DNA from: Laetmonice hystrix
Taxonomy: Eukaryota
Assembly: GCA_965235115.1 (NCBI GenBank)
Contig: OZ249445.1
Span: 15,190,001 to 15,254,000 of the forward strand
DNA length: 64,000 nucleotides
Reading direction: 5' to 3'
Shown here piece by piece: positions 14,301 through 32,300 of this stretch (positions within the stretch are counted from its first letter, which is position 1; every line of letters starts with the position of its first letter). The position numbers and the translations under genes were made by a program. Under the pieces are notes generated by a model, which was given only the letters and a program-made list of their open reading frames with translations, was not told where the DNA came from and made no database searches.

Positions 14301-17300
14301 GAATATTTAATTTAACAATCATTGAAGGGCCAGGGACTAAAGTGATTTCTTCATGCAATCTCCTTTTCAACTTCGAAAAAAAAAGTTCCGTGTGCTAGCC
14401 GTAGGCAGTGAGTAATTGCTAGAACAGCAGCGTAAGAACAAAGCTTGCCTGATGAGGAAGAATGAGCAGTGGATGTTATTATTGGGGTGTACGGGTCGTT
14501 ACAGGAGGCGGTGGGCTGGGATCCTCACCGTCATGGGAGGCAGTGGACTGGGATCCTCACCATCATGGGAGGCGGCGGGCTGGGATCTGACCGTCATGGG
14601 AGGCGGTGGGCTGGGATCCTCACCGTCATGGGAGGCGGTGGGCTGGGATCCTCACCGTCATGGGAGGTGGTGGACTGGGATCCTCACCGTCATGGGAGGC
14701 GGTGGGCTGGGATCCTCACCGTCATGGGAGGCGGTGGGCTGGGATCCTCACCGTCATGGGAGGCGGTGGACTGGGATCCTCAGTCATGCGAGGCGGTGGG
14801 CTGGAATCCTCACCGTCATGGGAGGCGGTGGGCTGGGACCCTCACCGTCATGGGAGGCGGTGGACTGGGATCCTCACCGTCATGGTAGGGGGTGGGCTGG
14901 GACCCTCACCGTCATGGGAGGCGGTGGGCTGGGATCCTCACCGTCATGGGAGGCGGTGGGCTGGGATCCTCACCGTGATGGAAGGCGGTGGGCTGGGATC
15001 CTCACCGTGATGGGAGGCGGTGGACTGGGATCCTCACCGTGATGGGAGGCGGTGGGCTGGGATCATCATCCTGGTCCAGGTTAGGCCATGGCTGGACCGT
15101 TAATTGGGGACCTGAGTGGTGAGTCTGAGCTGATGTCGGGGTTGGAGCCTGACTGGCTGAATACCTCTGCCCACACACCCTCAGGCTAAGGACAGTTAAT
15201 CCACTGTCGCCTCCATAATGGATGAGTGGAGTGGTGGGGAGAAGTTTGCAGATTACCCCAGGGGTAGGGCCAAGATGGGTGCCGAGTGCACGAATGTCCA
15301 ACACTTGTTCACCCATTCTCTTTCTACTGCTTTCATCCCAAAACCTGCCCGAATCTCTGCCTGCATCGTGTTCCGAGAACCGGCGTCGTTGGAATGAAAT
15401 GGAACCAAGAATGAATAGAAAATGGAGGACCCCGAGATAATTCACAACAGTGGGTTAAAACTTGTTATGGGGTAAACCCTACAGGATGGGTACTGGAATA
15501 GATGAACCTATTCCTATGTAAAATGTCGGTAGCCGTGAGTAGTATATGAGATGTGAGTGTTAGTGCTGGTAGTTATGACGAGAACTTTGCCAGGATTGTC
15601 AGGGTGAGGCCTGGCCGTCACTGAGTACGTACGTGTAACGTTCTCGACGGTAATGGACAAACTGACCGGAATGGAGGATGGCCAGTTAATGCCAAGATGG
15701 ATGTTGTCATTGATAGACTGGATATACCTTGAATTACCCCTGCCGGCCCCGACAGGAGCTTCTATCAATAATATAGGGGGTAATTATATTCCGCCAGTCG
15801 GAGACGTTAGTCACAGTGGTTTCAGTTGTTGGGTAGAACTATATTGTGCCCTAGCCTGGAGAAGGTAATTGTGTGTGTGTGTGCTGTGTTAGAATGGAAG
15901 TATGTACTGGTGTAAGATAGAAGCAGCCCCACCCCCCCCCCCCGCCGGCCTCCGACTTTACCGCGGTTATACCGTACGTCATCAGGCCTCAGGGTCTCTC
16001 ACCATATTGACGACGTTCATGGGACGTCATACCAGAGTGTGCACTTATTGCACATGTCGTCCATACCGCCTCCTGTCTAACCTCACACCCAGAGCACCCA
16101 TCTGTCACCTCCTGTCTCAGCCATCTGTCACCTCCTGTCTCAGCCTACCATCTGTACCACTCAACTGTCCCCCACCGTCCGCGGAGACTTGCCGCCTTTC
16201 TCCGTATTGCCTGCTATATTGTTTTATCCCCCTACCTACTCCCTGTAATATTGCTTGCTGATGAGAATATGTTACAGTGGCAGCCGTCCCAAGTGATACA
16301 TCGTAATGAAAGCTGCAGCTGTAGCTTTTCAAAATATCATTAATCTCCTCGACGTGGCCAGGGAGACTTTTCTTGACATATCCGATAATCTCAGCTTGTT
16401 TGTCGTTAATCCTGTGATTATTGTGTCTCTCGCTGCAGATCATCCTCCAGTCGCGAGATTACAATGCGCTGTCGATGAGCGTGATGGCCTTCGTGGCCAT
16501 GCTCTATCCACTCGAGTATATGTTCCCCGTCATTCCACTGCTGCCTACCTGTATGTCATCTGCTGAACAGGTACCTCCTTTTTATCATCCCACTCAACAA
16601 TCTGCAAATCGCTTATAATTGAATTCCATACATCAGTATAAGAGATTAATTTCATTTTAAGGCCAAAATATACTTATCTTGGGACAGATTATATTTTGAA
16701 TGGTTGATGAATTTGTTAATTCTGTCAAAACTTTGGAACGGGCCGTATTGTGTGTATTGGTCTTGAGTTTTACAACTGGTTATGTTTTTTCACAATAATG
16801 ATTCCTTACCAGAAAGATTAGAAAAGTGCCGTACTAACTGTAGAGTAGTAAATTGGCTTGAGTTTTCCGAAGAAGTAAGTCTGAGAGTGTGGTCAATATT
16901 TGATTGCAGTTGTTGCTGGCTCCGACGCCGTTCATCATCGGAATCCCGTCCAGCTTCCTCATGTACAAACAGAACTTCAGATTGCCCGACGATGTCTGGC
17001 TTGTTGACCTGGATTCCAACAGGGTGAGTGACTGCCCACTGTTGTCGGACGGAAAACCTAGATGGAACATTGATGAACTGAATTGATTACAAAATGAAGA
17101 GTGGTTTTCTAAACAGTTTAAGCTTATTTTTATTTATTTTATTACGAAAGTAAGTACTGGTGAGTCACTTTTGGATCTGAGGTGATCTTGTAACCGTTTT
17201 GCTGAAACGTAACCAGTTTATGGATGATTTTTTTTTTTATACTATCTCAGTTACTAAGTCCGGGACGGTGGGACCAGCATCGTGCAATTAACCAGGCTCA

Positions 17301-20300
17301 TGCCCAAGCCCAGGCCCAGGCTCAAGCTCAAGCCCAGGCCCAGGCCCAGGCTCAGGCCCAGGCTCAGGCCCAGGCTAACCAAGGTGCAGCTCCAAACGTA
17401 CCCCAAGTCCAGCTTCCGCCACAGGGGCCCTACTCAGAGCGCGACAGGATTGCAGCGCAGCAACAACAGCAAATGCTCCAGCAACAACAGCAAATGCTCC
17501 AGAAACAGCAATTTCATCAACAACAGCAACATCAGTACCAGATGCAGCAACACATGCAAAAACAGAATGGGGTATGTTTGATTCTCATTATGTTCTTGAA
17601 ACCTAGCAATTTTTTATCTCAGGTTCCTGTGGTTTTTCACAGTACTTTTTGAACCCCACTTCCTGCTAGTATGAGGTTGAGTATAGAAAAGCCATGTTCA
17701 AAACGTGGAGCCCAGCGTGGGCAGGCAGACCTAGCCATGAGTACTTGAGGAAGGCTGTCCCCACTTGGCGGTTGAGCCGTAGATTGCCGCCATTAAGAGG
17801 CGAGTGGCTGTGGGCCGAACGTGAGACGTCCTTATAGTAATCCATGGGATTCTCTGCGACTCTGTGCGCCGGGCCAGACAAACGAGACAGCTCACTCCCA
17901 CACACGGCTCGATATCAACTCCAGCCGAGTCAGTCCCCACTGCGCAATACTGACTGCTTTATCCTTCTAATGCGTACACGTCCTGTGCTAGTTAGTGCTG
18001 ATTATAGATATGACTTCAATCTGTGTGAACAGTACTCAAATAATGAACTGGGATTCTCTTTCAGCAGTTACCGAGATACACGCGGCGTGTTGTGTCAGAG
18101 CATGGTATTAAAACACAATCGTCGCATATACCGATAGCATACATTTATCATAGGTGTTATTTGATTAGGGTGACAAACAATGCGTGAATCCAGAGAAAAT
18201 TAGAATGTAATCTTTAGAATAACCTGTATTTTACTGTAGCCTGTACTGTGAGAGCGTGGGAACCAAACAGATGGCGTCAGCTTGGAGTCATTCGCTTGCT
18301 GTGTCTTATAATTTGTTTGTTTCACCTCACTTAACTGACCAGATGATTCAGAGCCTCCATTACCTTTCTTTCGGTCAGCGTCAGTTCGTAACTATTCGTC
18401 ATTTTGTGTGATAAAAGTAATCAGTGACCATTCGATTACTAATGGCCTTCATTTTTTATAAAAGAAGAATCTGTATGCTAATGAAACAAACCATTCAGGG
18501 TCGGCCTTAATATCGTAACGTTGATGAGGTTGATCCCGCTAGGAGAATTATAGCGAGAGTAAATGTGATAGGACACATTTCCATGTTAGCCAGTATTTAT
18601 GGGACCGTAAGCGGGTTGACATTGCCATCAGTCAGAACAAAGTGGATCAAGCCGTCATTAGGTGTCATAACCGGGATTTATACCTGACTCAGCAAGTCTG
18701 CAACGTGTGGTCGGTGGGGGGGGGGGGGGGGGGGTGGAGCAAATGAGTTCTGTGAATCTCGCTTCTTCTGTGGCGAGGACATTATGAACTCATTCTAAGG
18801 ACATTAGCTAAAATGGGCAGAAAAGGGGGTGGGGGGTATAGTGCTAGGTGGCTGTATGGTATGCTTATTGACATGGTTGTACAGAAAGGACTTGCATTAG
18901 CGGAGGTCGGTTGGTAGGGTGACCTTGAGATTGATTAGTAGAGGTCAGGTGGGAGCCTGAAGGTCAGTGTGGCTATGTTTGTGTTGTACCAGTGACAGTG
19001 GCTGGAACTGGAGAACAGGCTGACGTCATACAACACCAATCCAACCCAACGCGCGCTTCGTGCGGAAATTGGTTTTAATAAAACCATTCCTGGCCGTTAT
19101 CAAATAAAGGGTTGTTGACTTTCACCGAGTGGTCAGAACAGAAACAAGAGGGCATAAAGTCATATAATTAGGATTGATTTAAATCAGTGACAATGTTCCA
19201 GGAATGCCAGACTCTGCCATTGACTCTGATTATTGACCGGGTGTGCCGGGGGGGGGGGGGGGGGCATCGGTCTCCGATAATGAGGCGCTCTCTGCCGTTT
19301 ATTTATTCCGGACAGTTCTCCGAACTCAGAAGATGGCCCTCAGACAAAGCCAGCACGCATCTTGAGCCGGGGTGGGGCAGTTGGTGACTAATTAAATTGT
19401 TGACTCCCTCGCAATGACGTAAATCATCTCACCTGAGACATGAAGACAAATGGCTGCCGACAACATCTATTTATATAACAGTCCCGCTGTGGCCCCAGCG
19501 GAGACAAGATACATTATGCGTACATATACAGCATCCGAATATAGCGTACGATATGCCTGTGTTATCTCGGTGTATTAGGAATATAGCGTACGATATGCCT
19601 GTGTTATCTCGGTGTATTAGGAATATAGCGTACGATATGCCTGTGTTATCTCGGTGTATTAGGAATACAATTTGTAAAGTGATTGTTATTCAGTCCGACA
19701 TTTTGTCTGCGTTTTGTCTGCGTTTTGCCAGAGGGTGGTTTGAGGAGCTTTATGTGAGTTGTTAGGTGGTCCCTGGACTGACGAGATATTAGAACGCTGG
19801 CGTTTGTCGTAAATCATTACGTTTATTTCCTGCCCCCTGGGGTCGACCGGCGTGGGATTACTGGAGTGGAGGGTGCCCTTGACCTGAGGACGGCGGGTTC
19901 AACCTGTGCGAGATTTGTATTGTCGGTCAGGCCTCACGAGGTGAGCGGTCAGTCCCGGTAACAACACGGTCAACCATGGTCACTAACAATACCCCGGCAA
20001 GGTATTCACAGTAATAACACTTACCATCACAGTCACCCCACGTCATCGTGGACAATGAATTATACAACAGGGCCTTGGTTCCTGGTTGGCATACTCGTTC
20101 AATATGACGTTCAGAAAAATAATAATATTTCTATTTGATGGAACAATCTCTAACAAAGCATGCATTGGGAGCCTGACTGAAGTGTATAAATGAGGATTAA
20201 TAGATTCCCCCTCTGGGCGTTCATTAGCGATATGGATCCAGCTGGCATGCAGTCATCAGATCTCCGAAAGTATCTTCCTACTTCGATAAGATTCACCGCC

Positions 20301-23300
20301 AGATCCCAGAACAAAAGGACTTGATGAAAGAGTAGAGAATCGTCTCTGTACCACTGTATGTATTCTGCCGGTCGTTTTTTTATGGAGTCTCCCTTGTGAC
20401 GGATGAAACAGGAGAAGATCTTTAGAAAGCGCCTACTGTGGTTGCCTAACGACAGGCTATTTATATCTTCGGAAGACGGCAGGAGAAAGGCGATCCCTGG
20501 AGACAGTCGTCAATAGTCGCCGGGGGGGGGGGGGGGGGGGCATTGTGAGGCGAGGAACACGAGTCTGTCCATGTGAGGGGGTACGTCACACACCCCTCAC
20601 ACCTCACCCTAACCCACCCAGACAGAGGGGAAGGTGTTGTCATGGAAACACAGGGAGCACACCTGATAAATCAAGTACTTGGTGCCCTCTGCCCGTCTAG
20701 CATGTGTACATAGAAGTGGTATGACAGAGAGACACCCTCTGGCCTTAATGTAGAATTAGTAGATGAAGCCTTGGTTTAATGCATTGCCGTTCTGCAGCCG
20801 GTCGGGAAACATGGCGGTCTGGGGACCGAGTGATTCTGCTTTGGTACTACTCGGGTTTTTTGGGGGGCACTGTTTTTTTCCATGGTGACGTGAAGAAGAT
20901 AAACTGCCCGCTTGTCCTGTTGCGTCGTTTGTGGCGAGTAGGACGGCAGCAGGCAGTATGGGGGGGGGGGAGGTGGTTGGTCCTCCTGTCGGCTACTGTT
21001 GGCCGTCTCCAGGACGGAAACACGTTTTGTAGAGAGAGCTGCCGAGTCCTGGCCCCGGGTTTTAGTTTGCAAACTCAGTCTTAAGATTCAAATCTTAAGA
21101 CTGAACTCTTGTTTCAGAGCTTCTTTTCCAGTCTTAAGATTGGTAAAGTAACAAACTAAAAACCGGGCCCTGGGGTCAGATGTCATTATTCACGCCTGGA
21201 ATACGCTCCGATATTTCTCAGTTGGTTGGCGGGGTGGATTATTGTCTGTAGAGTTATTATAGCATTTACTGTGCGAGCAGAAAGAAAGAGGGAGAAATTG
21301 TTATTAGACGCCAGAATGTGATAAATGTCTGTCAGGGTGATATCCGATTATCTCACGGAACGAGTAGCGGTGAAAACATGGATAGCGTCAGTTGTAACGT
21401 CTTCGTTTACATCTACTAGCCCTGTCAGAGTCAACTTGAATGTTGCTTGTCGTAGATCTCACAACCGGCCAGCTGCCAAGGGACCGTACATTGCGGGGTA
21501 GACCGTTCAGATACCCCCCCCCCCCCCCTTCCAATTCTGATGGTGGACTGTGCATCCAGACTTAGCATAATGATCACTGAGTCCTAAATTTGATCCCGGC
21601 TGTGCCGGGGTGATGGAGTCGGCCGCCAAGGTTTATGTGAGCGAGGCGGCGGGCAGTGTGATGAAGTGGACCATAGACTGTCGAGTTTATGAGCGGTCGG
21701 TGGGGTACTGGACGCTCACCGCCCTCACCTCCACACTGAGGGTGGGCAAACTGACTGCCGCTACCATAACCTTATCACCAAACCCCACCACCTGCCCTCT
21801 CCCTGACACAGGTGCTAACACTGAATGCTGCCACGGCCGTATTCAAGCCGGCATCCATATTAATGTGGGTGCAAAGTTCTTGCCGGAGGAATTCCAGATG
21901 CAAATGGGTTTACGTCCTAGCAGATATCATCAGTCATTATATCAGGGGGAAAGTTGAAAATTGTTTTGCATATTACATAATATCATAAACGAACTTTGAA
22001 AAATTGGGACAATGTATGGTTCTATGATTTAGCTTAGCGCCATGTTCTCAATGATTATTGACCGATTCCCTCTTGCGGAGACACCGTTGCCATCCCAACA
22101 TCTTTTCCGTCAAAAGAAAAAAGATTAAATTCCTTTGCGGAGTTATTCATTTAATTACATCAGCCTGCCATGAGGTACGGTAAGGGCGACATGATGAAGA
22201 TGTCTGGCAGGGCCATGGAGACGTAGGCAGATGTGGTTTGGGCATATTTGACATCTTGAGAAGAATTTGGTTACATGTAAAATTGAGCATGACTTGATAT
22301 GGAAAGATTGGCCTTCAGCAAGTAAAGTGTTCTTGCACACAGGAACATGGCAGAGAGGCAAATCAATCCATGCAGTTGATGAATGAATCAAAAGCAGGAG
22401 TCACCTGTGATTGAGGGTCACCAGTATGGACGTCAGACCATTTTACACCAAGCCATCTACCTGTCTGTGTTTCTAATTCTGTCTGTATTCATTACACGTG
22501 AGATTCTAACAGCGTGTGTTAAATTTGTCTCTCAGGAATTCAAGCATCCCTGTCAAAATGAGAATCACGCCCGAACAGGAGTTGTTTGACTGCAAGTCAC
22601 GTTGTTGATCATGTGAATGAATTGTGACGTCATTGTAACGTCATGGCGGTTTCTCTTTGTCTTTGACTTAACTAGATGTCGGCTGCCACAGATGAACTCC
22701 CGCAAATGCCAGAACCCGAGGGGACAGTCTTGAAGAACCACCTCAGACAGGTTAGTAACCATGGCAACCACATTGTACATGTACTGCCTTGACAGTAGGC
22801 CAGCACTGATTACTCTCAGTGAACTGATGCTGTCAGCTGCCACGATATCTACAGCTGTTAGCCTACTGCTTGCTCTCAGTGCCAACTATGGCAATTGTTA
22901 CATGTTGTCATTTCGCGATAAAGCTATTTTCTTGGTGTTTTAATAGGAGGCATGCTTGTTGGGAACACATTTGAGTAGACTCTACTTCAAGAGAAATGTT
23001 TTTGAAGTTTTTCCATTGTTCTAAAATGTGAAGGCGAGCGAGAGATATTGCCTGGGCATATTGTTACTGAGAGATATTGCCTGGGGATATTGTTACTGAG
23101 AGATATTGCCTGGGGATATTGTTACTGAGAGATATTGCCTGGGGATATTGTTACTGAGAGATATTGCCTGGGGATATTGTTACTGAGAGATATTGCCTGG
23201 GGATATTGTTACTGAGAGATATTGCCTGGGGATATTGTTACTGAGAGATATTGCCTAGGGATATTGTTAGTGAGAGATATTGCCTGGGGATATTGTTAGT

Positions 23301-29300: not shown

Positions 29301-32300
29301 GACTTATTAATCTGGAAATAATGAAAATGTATTATACAAGTGGTCAGAACGATGTTGAGTGAGCAGTGAGAGTTTGAGCATGAGAGACTTGAGGAAGCAT
29401 GGCATGTCCAACCTCAGTCAAATCCGAAAGGCTGCATCAAATTATAGCCAAACGTAGCGGGTACTGACAGGCACCCAGCGAGCCTCAAGTGGTTTATTGA
29501 TATGTCATGCCCAACATGAGATACGAAGCAGTTCTGCTAAGTGGCTTTTCACTTTCTTGGCAGCAAATTCTGCACTTGCCAGCAGGGGTTAGGGAGAAAA
29601 TGATGGTAATGTCATCTTCAGGGAGTTGGGCCTGATAGAGAGCACCTGCCCGAGGTCCCCGGGGGTTGGGATGTAGATGATGGTATACAGGAGGCTAATG
29701 GAATGGTTGTGACGTGACTTCAACTACAGACTGGCTGTGGTAGATACTGCCTCATTTACCGGGATTGAGTTAGATTGAGAGACCATCCCACATGAATGGG
29801 GATATTTTATAAATTCAATTCAAACTCAATTCTGTACTCAAAACAGTAAGAAAAGAAAAGAAGGAGACTACCGTAAGTTCAAAGGTCACTGATGTATTTA
29901 TAAATTGGTCAGAAGAACTTACTGAATCTGTATTGTAACTGTCGCTACAGACTACAAGTATGTGTGCGTGTGTGTGTGTTTCAGAGGTGTATTGTGAAGA
30001 CCACATGTTGACGGTAGATGAGTCGTGCGTCTACTCGCCACCATCTAAACTTCAAGTACCTGACGCTGCCGCCTCCACCTTAGACTCGACCATGTCGGCG
30101 CCCGATGACAGTGACGACAATGATGACGATGACGACGACAGTTCATCAGCTTCCTCAAGTCCAACTTATGCAAATGAGCCTCCTAGGCCCCCACCTGGAA
30201 AGGTAAGCCAGACTGCCTAAATTACCCATGTCTTGAAGAAAAAGATATTGCAGTAGGAGTCAAAAGAATTTTTGCTGTGCATACATTAAATTGTTTGATC
30301 TGAAAGAATAATGGAGAGCGATGATGTCGAATCAACAATACACATTCTGAAGCAAGCAAATGTGCCTTGCATTCAAAAATCTAAATATAGTCATTCAGAA
30401 TTGAGGTAGTATTTGTATTTATAATATTTTTTATTTTTTCGAATCAGGCTGAAGGTGACCATTTCCGCTACGACCCCCCTAATGTACAGAAACCAGAAGC
30501 ACGGTATGAGCCAGGAGTTGGCAGCACGACATCTCCACGATCAGATGGACCGTTTAGGTACGACTCTGGAAACGTTACACCAACCTCCAAGGCTGAGGGA
30601 GTGTTCAGGTATGATGGAAGTGGACCGCCCAACCCCCAACAGAGGCCAGAAGTTACCAAGAGGTGGGTGCCCCTACATAGGAAAATCATAGGATATTGAT
30701 GCTCGATAGTGAAATATTCCGAGTATATTATAGATTGCCCCCCGTCATTGGTTCCTTGTAAGACAGGAGCATGAAAATTAGATATTAATGGAAGGTCTGA
30801 CATGTTGAAACAAGTTGACGATTACAGTGTTTGTATGATTTAATTTCAGGGATACCCCTCCACCCCGCCCGGAGCCCCCAGCACGTCCCCCACCTCCCAC
30901 CCACACTGCTTCCATACGGAGTGTTGACTCGGCGTTTGAGTCCATGCCACGGACCTCCTCGGTTGACTCAACAAGGGTGGCGACTCCGCCCCTGCAGCGC
31001 CGAGGGCCACCGGACCTAACCAGGACTGGTTCCCTCAATGTACAGCCCCCAACCCCACCGATAGGTCCGCAAGGTCCGAGGTTACAGAGGCCCGGAGAGG
31101 GCAGTCTTGGACCACCCAAGTCACCACGACCACCCCGCAGTCCGGGAATACCAGGACTACCTGGAGTTGGTATCAGCAAGGTTAGTGTCATCTACACATC
31201 TCCTTTACCTGGTATGGACAATCTCCTTTACCTGGTATGGACAATCTCCTTTACCTGGTATGGACAATCTCCTTTACCTGGTATGGACAATCTCCTTTAC
31301 CTGGTATGGACAATCTCCTTTACCTGGTATGGACAATCTCCTTTACCTGGTATGGACAATCTCCTTTACCTGGTATGAACAATTCTCAAAACCTTGGATA
31401 ACAATTATGGTTTAAATTGCCTTTTAAAAGCGAAATAAAGATTATTGTTATGTTTGAGCCGTGCCTGCTGAGTGCTGTCCGATTCTTTCACTGGCCGTGA
31501 CAACATGTTTCAGAGCGGAGACAGTGATGGAGAAAAGAGCCCGTCGATCATGAAGGCAATCAGCAGTGAACTCAACGACTACGCGCAGACAGCGAGTAAC
31601 ACCATCTCGGAACTGTTCGGTAGGTAGTCACATTCAGTGCAGTCTCATCCTGCTGGTATTGACGTTCGTCAGTGTGATTGATGTCTGTCAGTCTGATCGA
31701 TTGATCCATTATAAACTGCTGCTCACCCTTTTATAACAGTCGAACGATGCATCTTGGTTTATTTCCTGGTAGTTATATCAATGAGGTAAACCCACTGTGA
31801 TTTCTAAGCTCATTTGCTTGCTAGTTCAACTTTTATTTTTGCCATACATTTGTAAAAGGTTTCTCTTGGTAGTGCATGTGACAGTCTCATCCCCTAAAAC
31901 CAAAATAACCTGAATCATCTGGTGTTTTGTGTTGATTCCTCTAACCTGTAGTGGCAATTCATTCGATTATTCTAGAAGTAGTGTGGCTAACTAGTTTATT
32001 TTTTAGGCTGTATTTTTGTCACACTTGGTAATTCCTGTCATTGCTATGCTATTGCTATGTTTTCATGTACCATTAATAGTTGATTGCTTGAACCTGTAGT
32101 CTCTTCACCATTAGTAAATTTCTCTGAGTTTCTTGAGTTGATTTGTTGGAAGATCTGAGCCTTGGCTGTACCCGTGTTTATAGTTTTTGTTAGTGTTAGT
32201 GGTCGTTGACCTGAGCCTCTTGAGTAATTGAGTAAAATGAGGCACTCGTTACTTACAGAGGGGAAAGAAAGTGAAACGGATGAGGAGAGTACAACGGGTA

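Follow-up and report, generated by a model that had tools for sequence, protein, structure and literature searches.

The stretch of DNA analyzed here, referred to as the window, comprises 64,000 nucleotides from Laetmonice hystrix (contig OZ249445.1 of assembly GCA_965235115.1, positions 15,190,001 to 15,254,000 of the forward strand), and its sequence identifies the gene it carries as that for MADD/Rab3GEP, a Rab3 exchange factor. An intron of this gene contains an open frame of 321 bases that an earlier note on the same DNA put forward as a cassette exon inserted into the DENN core of the protein; we refer to this frame as the candidate. By tblastn and spliced alignment, the exons of the window are collinear with MADD from Tubulanus (P0156, 73% identity) and from Ptychodera (P0066, 64% identity), and the 19–25 ordered exon matches extend from about residue 211 to the C-terminus. 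The DENN, death and PH parts occur in order, and Pfam assigns uDENN, DENN, Death_MADD and PH_MADD to the Ptychodera orthologue. The candidate is flanked by two MADD exons, w4 and w5 (Table 1). When used as a query, w4 returned 150 MADD matches (cluster representatives); the core DENN domain ends in this exon, which also carries predicted Rab-contact residues.

The intron that contains the candidate is in phase 0 and 5.65 kb long, with 227 bases preceding the candidate, and the earlier placement between the DLDSNR exon (w4) and w5 was borne out by junction-by-junction alignment. Because both flanking exons are in phase 0 and the length of the candidate is a multiple of three, its inclusion would preserve the reading frame. 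Directly 5' of the candidate, a T11 tract at 17229–17239 is followed by ATACTATCTCAG, and a possible branch point, CTGAAAC, is found ~35 bases 5' of the AG. The w5 acceptor (22656–22675) consists of a TAG behind a modest pyrimidine tract, TTTGTCTTTGACTTAACTAG, and by eye appears weaker than that of the candidate. An Rfam search of 16500–23000 returned no family. In the DNA sequencing runs, very abundant repeat families were seen at 21051–21250 (summed contig depth ~117,000), 19051–19450 and 20451–20650, and these repeats partly account for the 5.65-kb length of the intron versus 13–2039 bases in relatives.

Table 1. Coordinates of the candidate, its parts and the surrounding features, in positions of the window (a slash marks an exon border; GC, G+C content).
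Feature	Position	Strand	Remarks
MADD exon w4, 38 codons, LLLAPTPF...VDLDSNR	16910–17023	+	Spliced alignment to P0156; donor AGG/GTGAGT, phase 0
AT-rich stretch, GC 0.34; would form a short intron upon use of the candidate	17024–17250	+	227 bases
Candidate cassette exon	17251–17571	+	321 bases; translation and splice-site scores
Non-repeat start of candidate, 14 codons (17251–17291)		+	Unique sequence
(GCYCAR)14 hexamer microsatellite, read as AQ run	17292–17375	+	Tandem Repeats Finder: period 6, 14 copies, 83% matches
Unique 27-codon spacer, GC 0.60	17376–17457	+	Without a match elsewhere in the genome
CAA/CAG-rich tail	17458–17571	+	QQQQQML twice, then Q/H/M-rich
21-base repeat inside the tail, 2.4 copies	17458–17507	+	Tandem Repeats Finder
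Post-donor stretch, frame open up to TGA at 17650–17652	17572–17652	+	Second in-frame donor-like CAG/GTTCCT after 17622
Rest of expanded intron, several high-copy repeats	17572–22675	+	Depth spikes in DNA contigs
MADD exon w5, 25 codons, phase 0-0	22676–22750	+	Acceptor ...TTAACTAG; donor CAG/GTTAGT

Translation of window 17251–17571 (+) yielded 107 codons free of stops in phase 0-0, confirming the earlier description of this segment, including its T-rich acceptor and its GGG/gtatgt donor. The surrounding open frame is longer and spans 148 codons (17206–17649). Two simple repeats, the hexamer microsatellite and the CAA/CAG-rich tail, make up 62% of the candidate frame. Glutamine accounts for 41 of the 107 residues (38%) and alanine for 19, while only nine are charged. 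The term prion-like, previously applied to this segment, fits its composition (Q+N 42%, few charged residues) and describes composition only. The codons are indeed mixed, as had been noted (CAG 24, CAA 17, GCC 8, GCT 7, GCA 3 and GCG 1); as a clue to coding this is weak, since non-coding copies of the hexamer display a similar mixture of GCC and GCT. A Pfam search of the candidate returned no family.

The candidate is neither conserved in MADD nor a constitutive part of it. We measured the spacing between the DLDSN[KR] motif encoded by w4 and the PEPE motif encoded by w5 in the best 120 of 8000 protein matches to Ptychodera MADD, a set that spans hemichordates, molluscs, an annelid (Owenia), a nemertean, a brachiopod, amphioxus, arthropods and vertebrates, includes many isoform-rich NCBI sets, and may lack closer annelid proteins. 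In 114 of these proteins the two motifs are separated by 12–17 residues (13 residues, n = 99; 12, n = 9; 17, n = 5; 15, n = 1), in agreement with the earlier note, which has them nearly adjacent in the human protein. Likewise, none of the 150 MADD cluster representatives contains an insert, and each spliced one passes from DLDSN[KR] to LPxLPEPE within a few residues. The Tubulanus intron at this site is ~740 bases long; each of its frames is interrupted by stops, and none is Q-rich. The upstream exon was also recovered on 40 contigs of worm origin, taken from metagenomes or low-coverage assemblies, and 28 of these carry the downstream exon as well. In these 28 contigs the two exons are 13–2039 bases apart, and the intervals contain no Q-rich frame and no tblastn match to the candidate; in the two closest contigs the intron measures 230 and 320 bases. 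No match to the upstream exon exceeds 86% identity, and the relatives compared include no congener.

Searches with the candidate protein found no relative among proteins of 59–187 residues or in Joint Genome Institute (JGI) metagenomes, and a protein-level search of its own genome returned only two repeat arrays with stops and no paralogue. The first codons of the candidate were also considered as homologous to the start of w5 in relatives, in which case the T-rich acceptor would be the ancestral w5 acceptor; this was rejected, as there is no DNA similarity. In the literature we found no report of Q-rich sequence inserted into MADD at this site. The label lineage-specific stands, given that nothing similar occurs at the site in the 114 MADD proteins, the Tubulanus gene or the 28 worm contigs, and the tblastn comparison with related genomes that had been suggested gave no match in the 28 contigs. 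Absence from relatives indicates that the candidate is either recent or not an exon.

The structural context of the insertion site was examined in orthologues. In Ptychodera MADD, the Pfam DENN domain extends to residue 390, which belongs to the DLDSNK motif (385–391). We modeled residues 1–640 of MADD from Tubulanus, the closest orthologue (P0156), with AlphaFold2 and a 28-sequence alignment (mean predicted local distance difference test score (pLDDT) 63.5, predicted template modeling score (pTM) 0.62). In this model, which is of moderate overall confidence, the junction, K393/I394, falls between strands at 384–388 and 393–395 with a pLDDT of 84–90. A helix at 410–426 follows, with a pLDDT of 77–82 up to residue 420, and the low-confidence linker begins at about residue 428; the flexible linker thereby starts ~35 residues beyond the insertion point. 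Judged from the model, an insert here would fall in the final hairpin of the core DENN domain, as opposed to a floppy linker. The claim that the candidate is inserted inside the DENN core is imprecise: going by the predicted hairpin it would be roughly true in three dimensions, while by Pfam the junction is at the domain edge. In a published model of Rab3GEP, I353/L366 form Rab-binding site I and T371/P372 form site II (PMC6526710). L366 corresponds to codon 1 of w4 and T371/P372 to codons 6–7, and thus the insert would start 31–32 residues after the modeled site II. Because the hairpin is confidently predicted and the spacing is fixed in 114 proteins, this site is unlikely to tolerate an insert of 107 residues. 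If the candidate were used, an effect on the exchange module would be plausible.

The repeats that hold the frame open are common in the genome. (GCCCAG)n is found at 60 or more other places with 80–91% identity, several of them long arrays, and the CAR-rich tail matches other CAR-rich tracts at 72–76%. The unique parts of the candidate occur once in the 627-Mb genome. As controls we used 31 other (GCYCAR)n loci, of which 10 lie in AQ-frame open reading frames (ORFs) of at least 107 codons and six in ORFs of at least 148 codons; repeats of this type stay open in two or three frames. Because a third of the control loci have equally long AQ-frame ORFs, the open frame of the candidate carries little weight. 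Interruptions of the AQ run at wobble positions were considered as a sign of coding and rejected: in three of the eight control arrays with at least five interruptions, every interruption likewise falls on position 3 or 6 of the hexamer, and the other arrays abound in GCT units.

To score codon usage, we used a log-likelihood trained on 1185 codons of the MADD gene, a measure that is confounded by composition. Each of the 25 coding segments supported by homology has its highest score in the true frame. The candidate scores +9.5 bits in the exon frame and +20.4 bits in the next frame (+1), values subject to the same confounding. Read in the exon frame, its unique start reaches −0.9 bits and its unique spacer +3.5 bits, and random stop-free intronic segments of 41 codons have a mean of −4.3 bits (standard deviation 7.6). 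We count the codon test as neutral to mildly negative for an exon.

We favor, with a probability of about 55%, the reading that the candidate is a young, lineage-specific proto-exon that is unused or spliced at the level of noise. On this reading it is intronic sequence, unique in the genome, within a MADD intron that has grown greatly, and two simple repeats common in the genome, (GCCCAG)n and a CAA/CAG-rich tract, keep a long frame open there. The poly-T and CAG upstream and the GTATGT downstream would then be in phase by happenstance, and normal mRNA would join 17023 directly to 22676, with the candidate skipped or included at noise level.

A number of findings weigh against the lack of use that we infer. 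The most serious competing explanation, which we hold tentatively and as the less probable of the two, is that the candidate is a genuine lineage-specific alternative cassette. It would place 107 residues, rich in Gln/Ala and probably disordered or helical, behind DLDSNR, giving a MADD isoform that might differ in Rab3/Rab27 exchange, partner binding or self-association. We scored its splice sites with position weight matrices built from 13 MADD junctions proven by homology. The acceptor reaches 6.3 bits, which is the median of the 13 proven acceptors and within the top 3.2% of AGs in the window. The GTATGT donor (17572–17577) appears usable and reaches 4.1 bits, just below the proven range of 4.2–11.1 and within the top 8.8% of GTs. 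Additionally, length and phase fit exactly, the GC content steps from 0.34 to 0.57 at the acceptor as it does at real MADD exons, and the upstream interval of 227 bases is typical of the short introns of MADD (152–403 bases). Absence from distant relatives is itself compatible with a recent exon.

Such a combination of signals is hard to find elsewhere. We searched the window with an exon-like filter that required an acceptor/donor pair at the score thresholds, a length divisible by three and an open frame. Pairs of at least 150 bases were found at nine places on the gene strand. Five of these have homology-proven acceptors at 2783, 26637, 27211 and 37062 or a position inside the homology-matched segment 39548–40222 (39564/39818); the further places include 30850, which is discussed below, 32259, which is unassigned, and the candidate. 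The filter thus passes almost only real exons on this strand, and on the opposite strand of the window it passed one pair of at least 150 bases and none of at least 300. Among the 31 control loci, an acceptor was found in five and a donor in eight, and no locus had an in-phase pair. The full exon-like configuration is therefore uncommon, with a rough chance of 1–2% per repeat locus.

The same genome also provides a precedent. One of the control loci, the start of a kinase gene (L095:254–1234; G000:C8:16757453–16758433, +), contains an ORF of 327 codons in which poly-Q, ~24 AQ units encoded by GCCCAG and a Q/M/H-rich stretch precede the opening 38 positions of a protein-kinase domain, GRGQFSVVYRA (Pfam Pkinase positions 2–39, E = 8e-4), where the ORF ends. 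By its sequence, L095 is a real coding exon that translates (GCCCAG)n, and this precedent raises somewhat the prior for the candidate as an exon. The cassette explanation also draws on some MADD orthologues (P0074, P0075 and P0083) whose nearby linker contains Q-rich stretches.

Variation at the locus was assessed in the three sequencing runs found to cover the stretch, which derive from one sample of one organism; the other runs returned matched it by a small share only, through repeats. All three are genomic DNA, since contigs cross 17023/17024 and 17250/17251 unbroken and depth is even through the intron. Within 16851–22850, contig records 1, 9 and 17 cover 16851–17290 and records 2 and 18 cover 17381–17915; no contig shows a joint at 17023, 17251, 17571 or 22676. 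No heterozygous difference is listed in 231 assessable bases, a count that leaves out the repeat part of the candidate, as compared with ~2 expected; this difference is not significant and speaks for use only weakly. A 2-base deletion variant is present at 17228, in the T tract before the acceptor. A possible second allele carries an additional 21 bases at 17531, an in-frame duplication of QFHQQQQ that would include two synonymous changes and would speak for a cassette. We give this joint little weight: it is seen in one contig at ~2x local depth and could derive from another CAR-rich locus.

Set against these points, the cassette explanation has to accommodate a lack of conservation at any distance reached, a site that is ordered in the model and strictly conserved in spacing, codon statistics that are not specific to the frame, a weak donor, and a frame most of which is a common non-coding microsatellite. 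Starting from a prior of 1–6% that a repeat locus of this type is coding, applying a likelihood ratio of ~35 for the splice sites together with phase, and halving the odds for the constrained site, we arrive at a chance of roughly 35–45% that the candidate is spliced at all. A more specific proposal is that a recent, regulated (for example neuronal) cassette arose from the two microsatellites and that its prion-like insert tunes Rab3/Rab27 exchange or release-site clustering; we consider this doubtful. The effects put forward in the earlier note, altered GEF activity or condensate formation, would likewise presuppose a used exon and are hypothetical.

It is less likely still that the frame is used in some way other than as a cassette, although the donor is the weaker of its two splice sites. 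As an alternative last exon, it would use the acceptor and not the donor, and the 26 codons by which the frame continues past the donor to the TGA would end a truncated uDENN+DENN protein with a Q-rich tail at the stop at 17650. The nearest poly(A)-signal hexamer, however, is at 18107, ~450 bases beyond the stop, and the post-donor stretch scores as non-coding (−7.7 bits). As a first coding exon, it would begin a short transcript from an internal promoter at the ATG at 17224, which opens an ORF of 142 codons, but the residues nearest this ATG would be encoded by the polypyrimidine tract. Neither use is matched by a protein of such a kind in the databases. Finally, a separate nested gene or a transposable-element remnant with its own coding sequence is highly improbable, because despite the repeat-rich intron the surrounding 1.7 kb is, microsatellites aside, present in a single copy, and the frame shows no protein-level paralogue, no Pfam or Rfam family and no long frame on the opposite strand.

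Several other frames were observed in the course of this analysis. Minisatellite arrays at 169–868 and 14416–15039 (+) contain long frames of up to 208 codons without splice-like borders, and are examples of repeat-made ORFs in MADD introns. At 30850–31326 (+), a Pro/Ser/Thr-rich open frame with good splice-like borders has weak matches to residues 730–780 of mollusc MADD, and its 3' part enters a tandem repeat (31186–31398); this is probably a divergent middle-region MADD exon. In the MADD locus of Tubulanus polymorphus, a second copy of the exon for residues 322–360, 82% identical, is present at L011:19546–19662, ~3.4 kb downstream of the first (16029–16181). On sequence grounds this copy may be a duplicated or alternative DENN exon. 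Elsewhere in the L. hystrix genome, a Ser-rich ORF of at least 445 codons without a Pfam family (L077:1–1335; G000:C2:30942250–30943584) contains an AQ/AH run and is probably another coding exon with an AQ repeat.

If the candidate is an unused proto-exon, as we favor, the locus is a caution for annotation: because open frames over simple repeats with splice-like sites arise in expanded introns, repeat frames with good-looking splice sites need RNA or conservation before they are annotated. If instead the exon is used, a domain junction that is near-invariant across animal phyla can accept a large low-complexity insert, and the growth of an intronic microsatellite can give rise to a coding exon in the gene for a synaptic exchange factor. 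The gene would then offer a natural experiment on disordered inserts in a DENN Rab exchange factor. Were the exon a recent regulated cassette, repeat-driven exon birth would have been caught in the act inside a catalytic domain.

With respect to known systems, the flanking exons encode the conserved LLLAPTPF...DLDSNR and LPxxPEPEG...LKNHLKQ segments of the MADD/Rab3GEP/DENN proteins (AEX-3, Rab3-GEF). If used, the candidate would set this gene apart from the MADD proteins compared (114 close matches and 150 cluster representatives), which have no insert between these segments. The known alternative exons of vertebrate MADD (13L, 16, 21, 26 and 34) are elsewhere in the gene. The Q-rich stretches between cDENN and dDENN in P0074, P0075 and P0083 come within ~40 residues of the candidate region. 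They follow the ALASMS helix, in a part that is disordered in the model (428–464), and they are neither at the DLDSNR junction nor, apparently, on an exon of their own. The kinase L095 resembles the candidate in reading GCCCAG as AQ with poly-Q and Q/M/H-rich sequence beside it. The two are not homologous, and in the kinase the repeat is in a terminal disordered region and not inside a folded domain.

The closest likeness is to exonized simple repeats and proto-exons. Young exons tend to be lineage-restricted, symmetric in phase and low in complexity, to lie in expanded introns, and to have splice sites that can arise from poly-T. The candidate shares these features, as it is restricted to its lineage, in phase 0-0, of low complexity, and set behind poly-T in an expanded intron; its 321 bases exceed the length of most new exons, and it is known here as a predicted exon. 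Lineage-restricted candidate exons derived from repeats are thus an already known kind, of which this is one more, at an interesting site.

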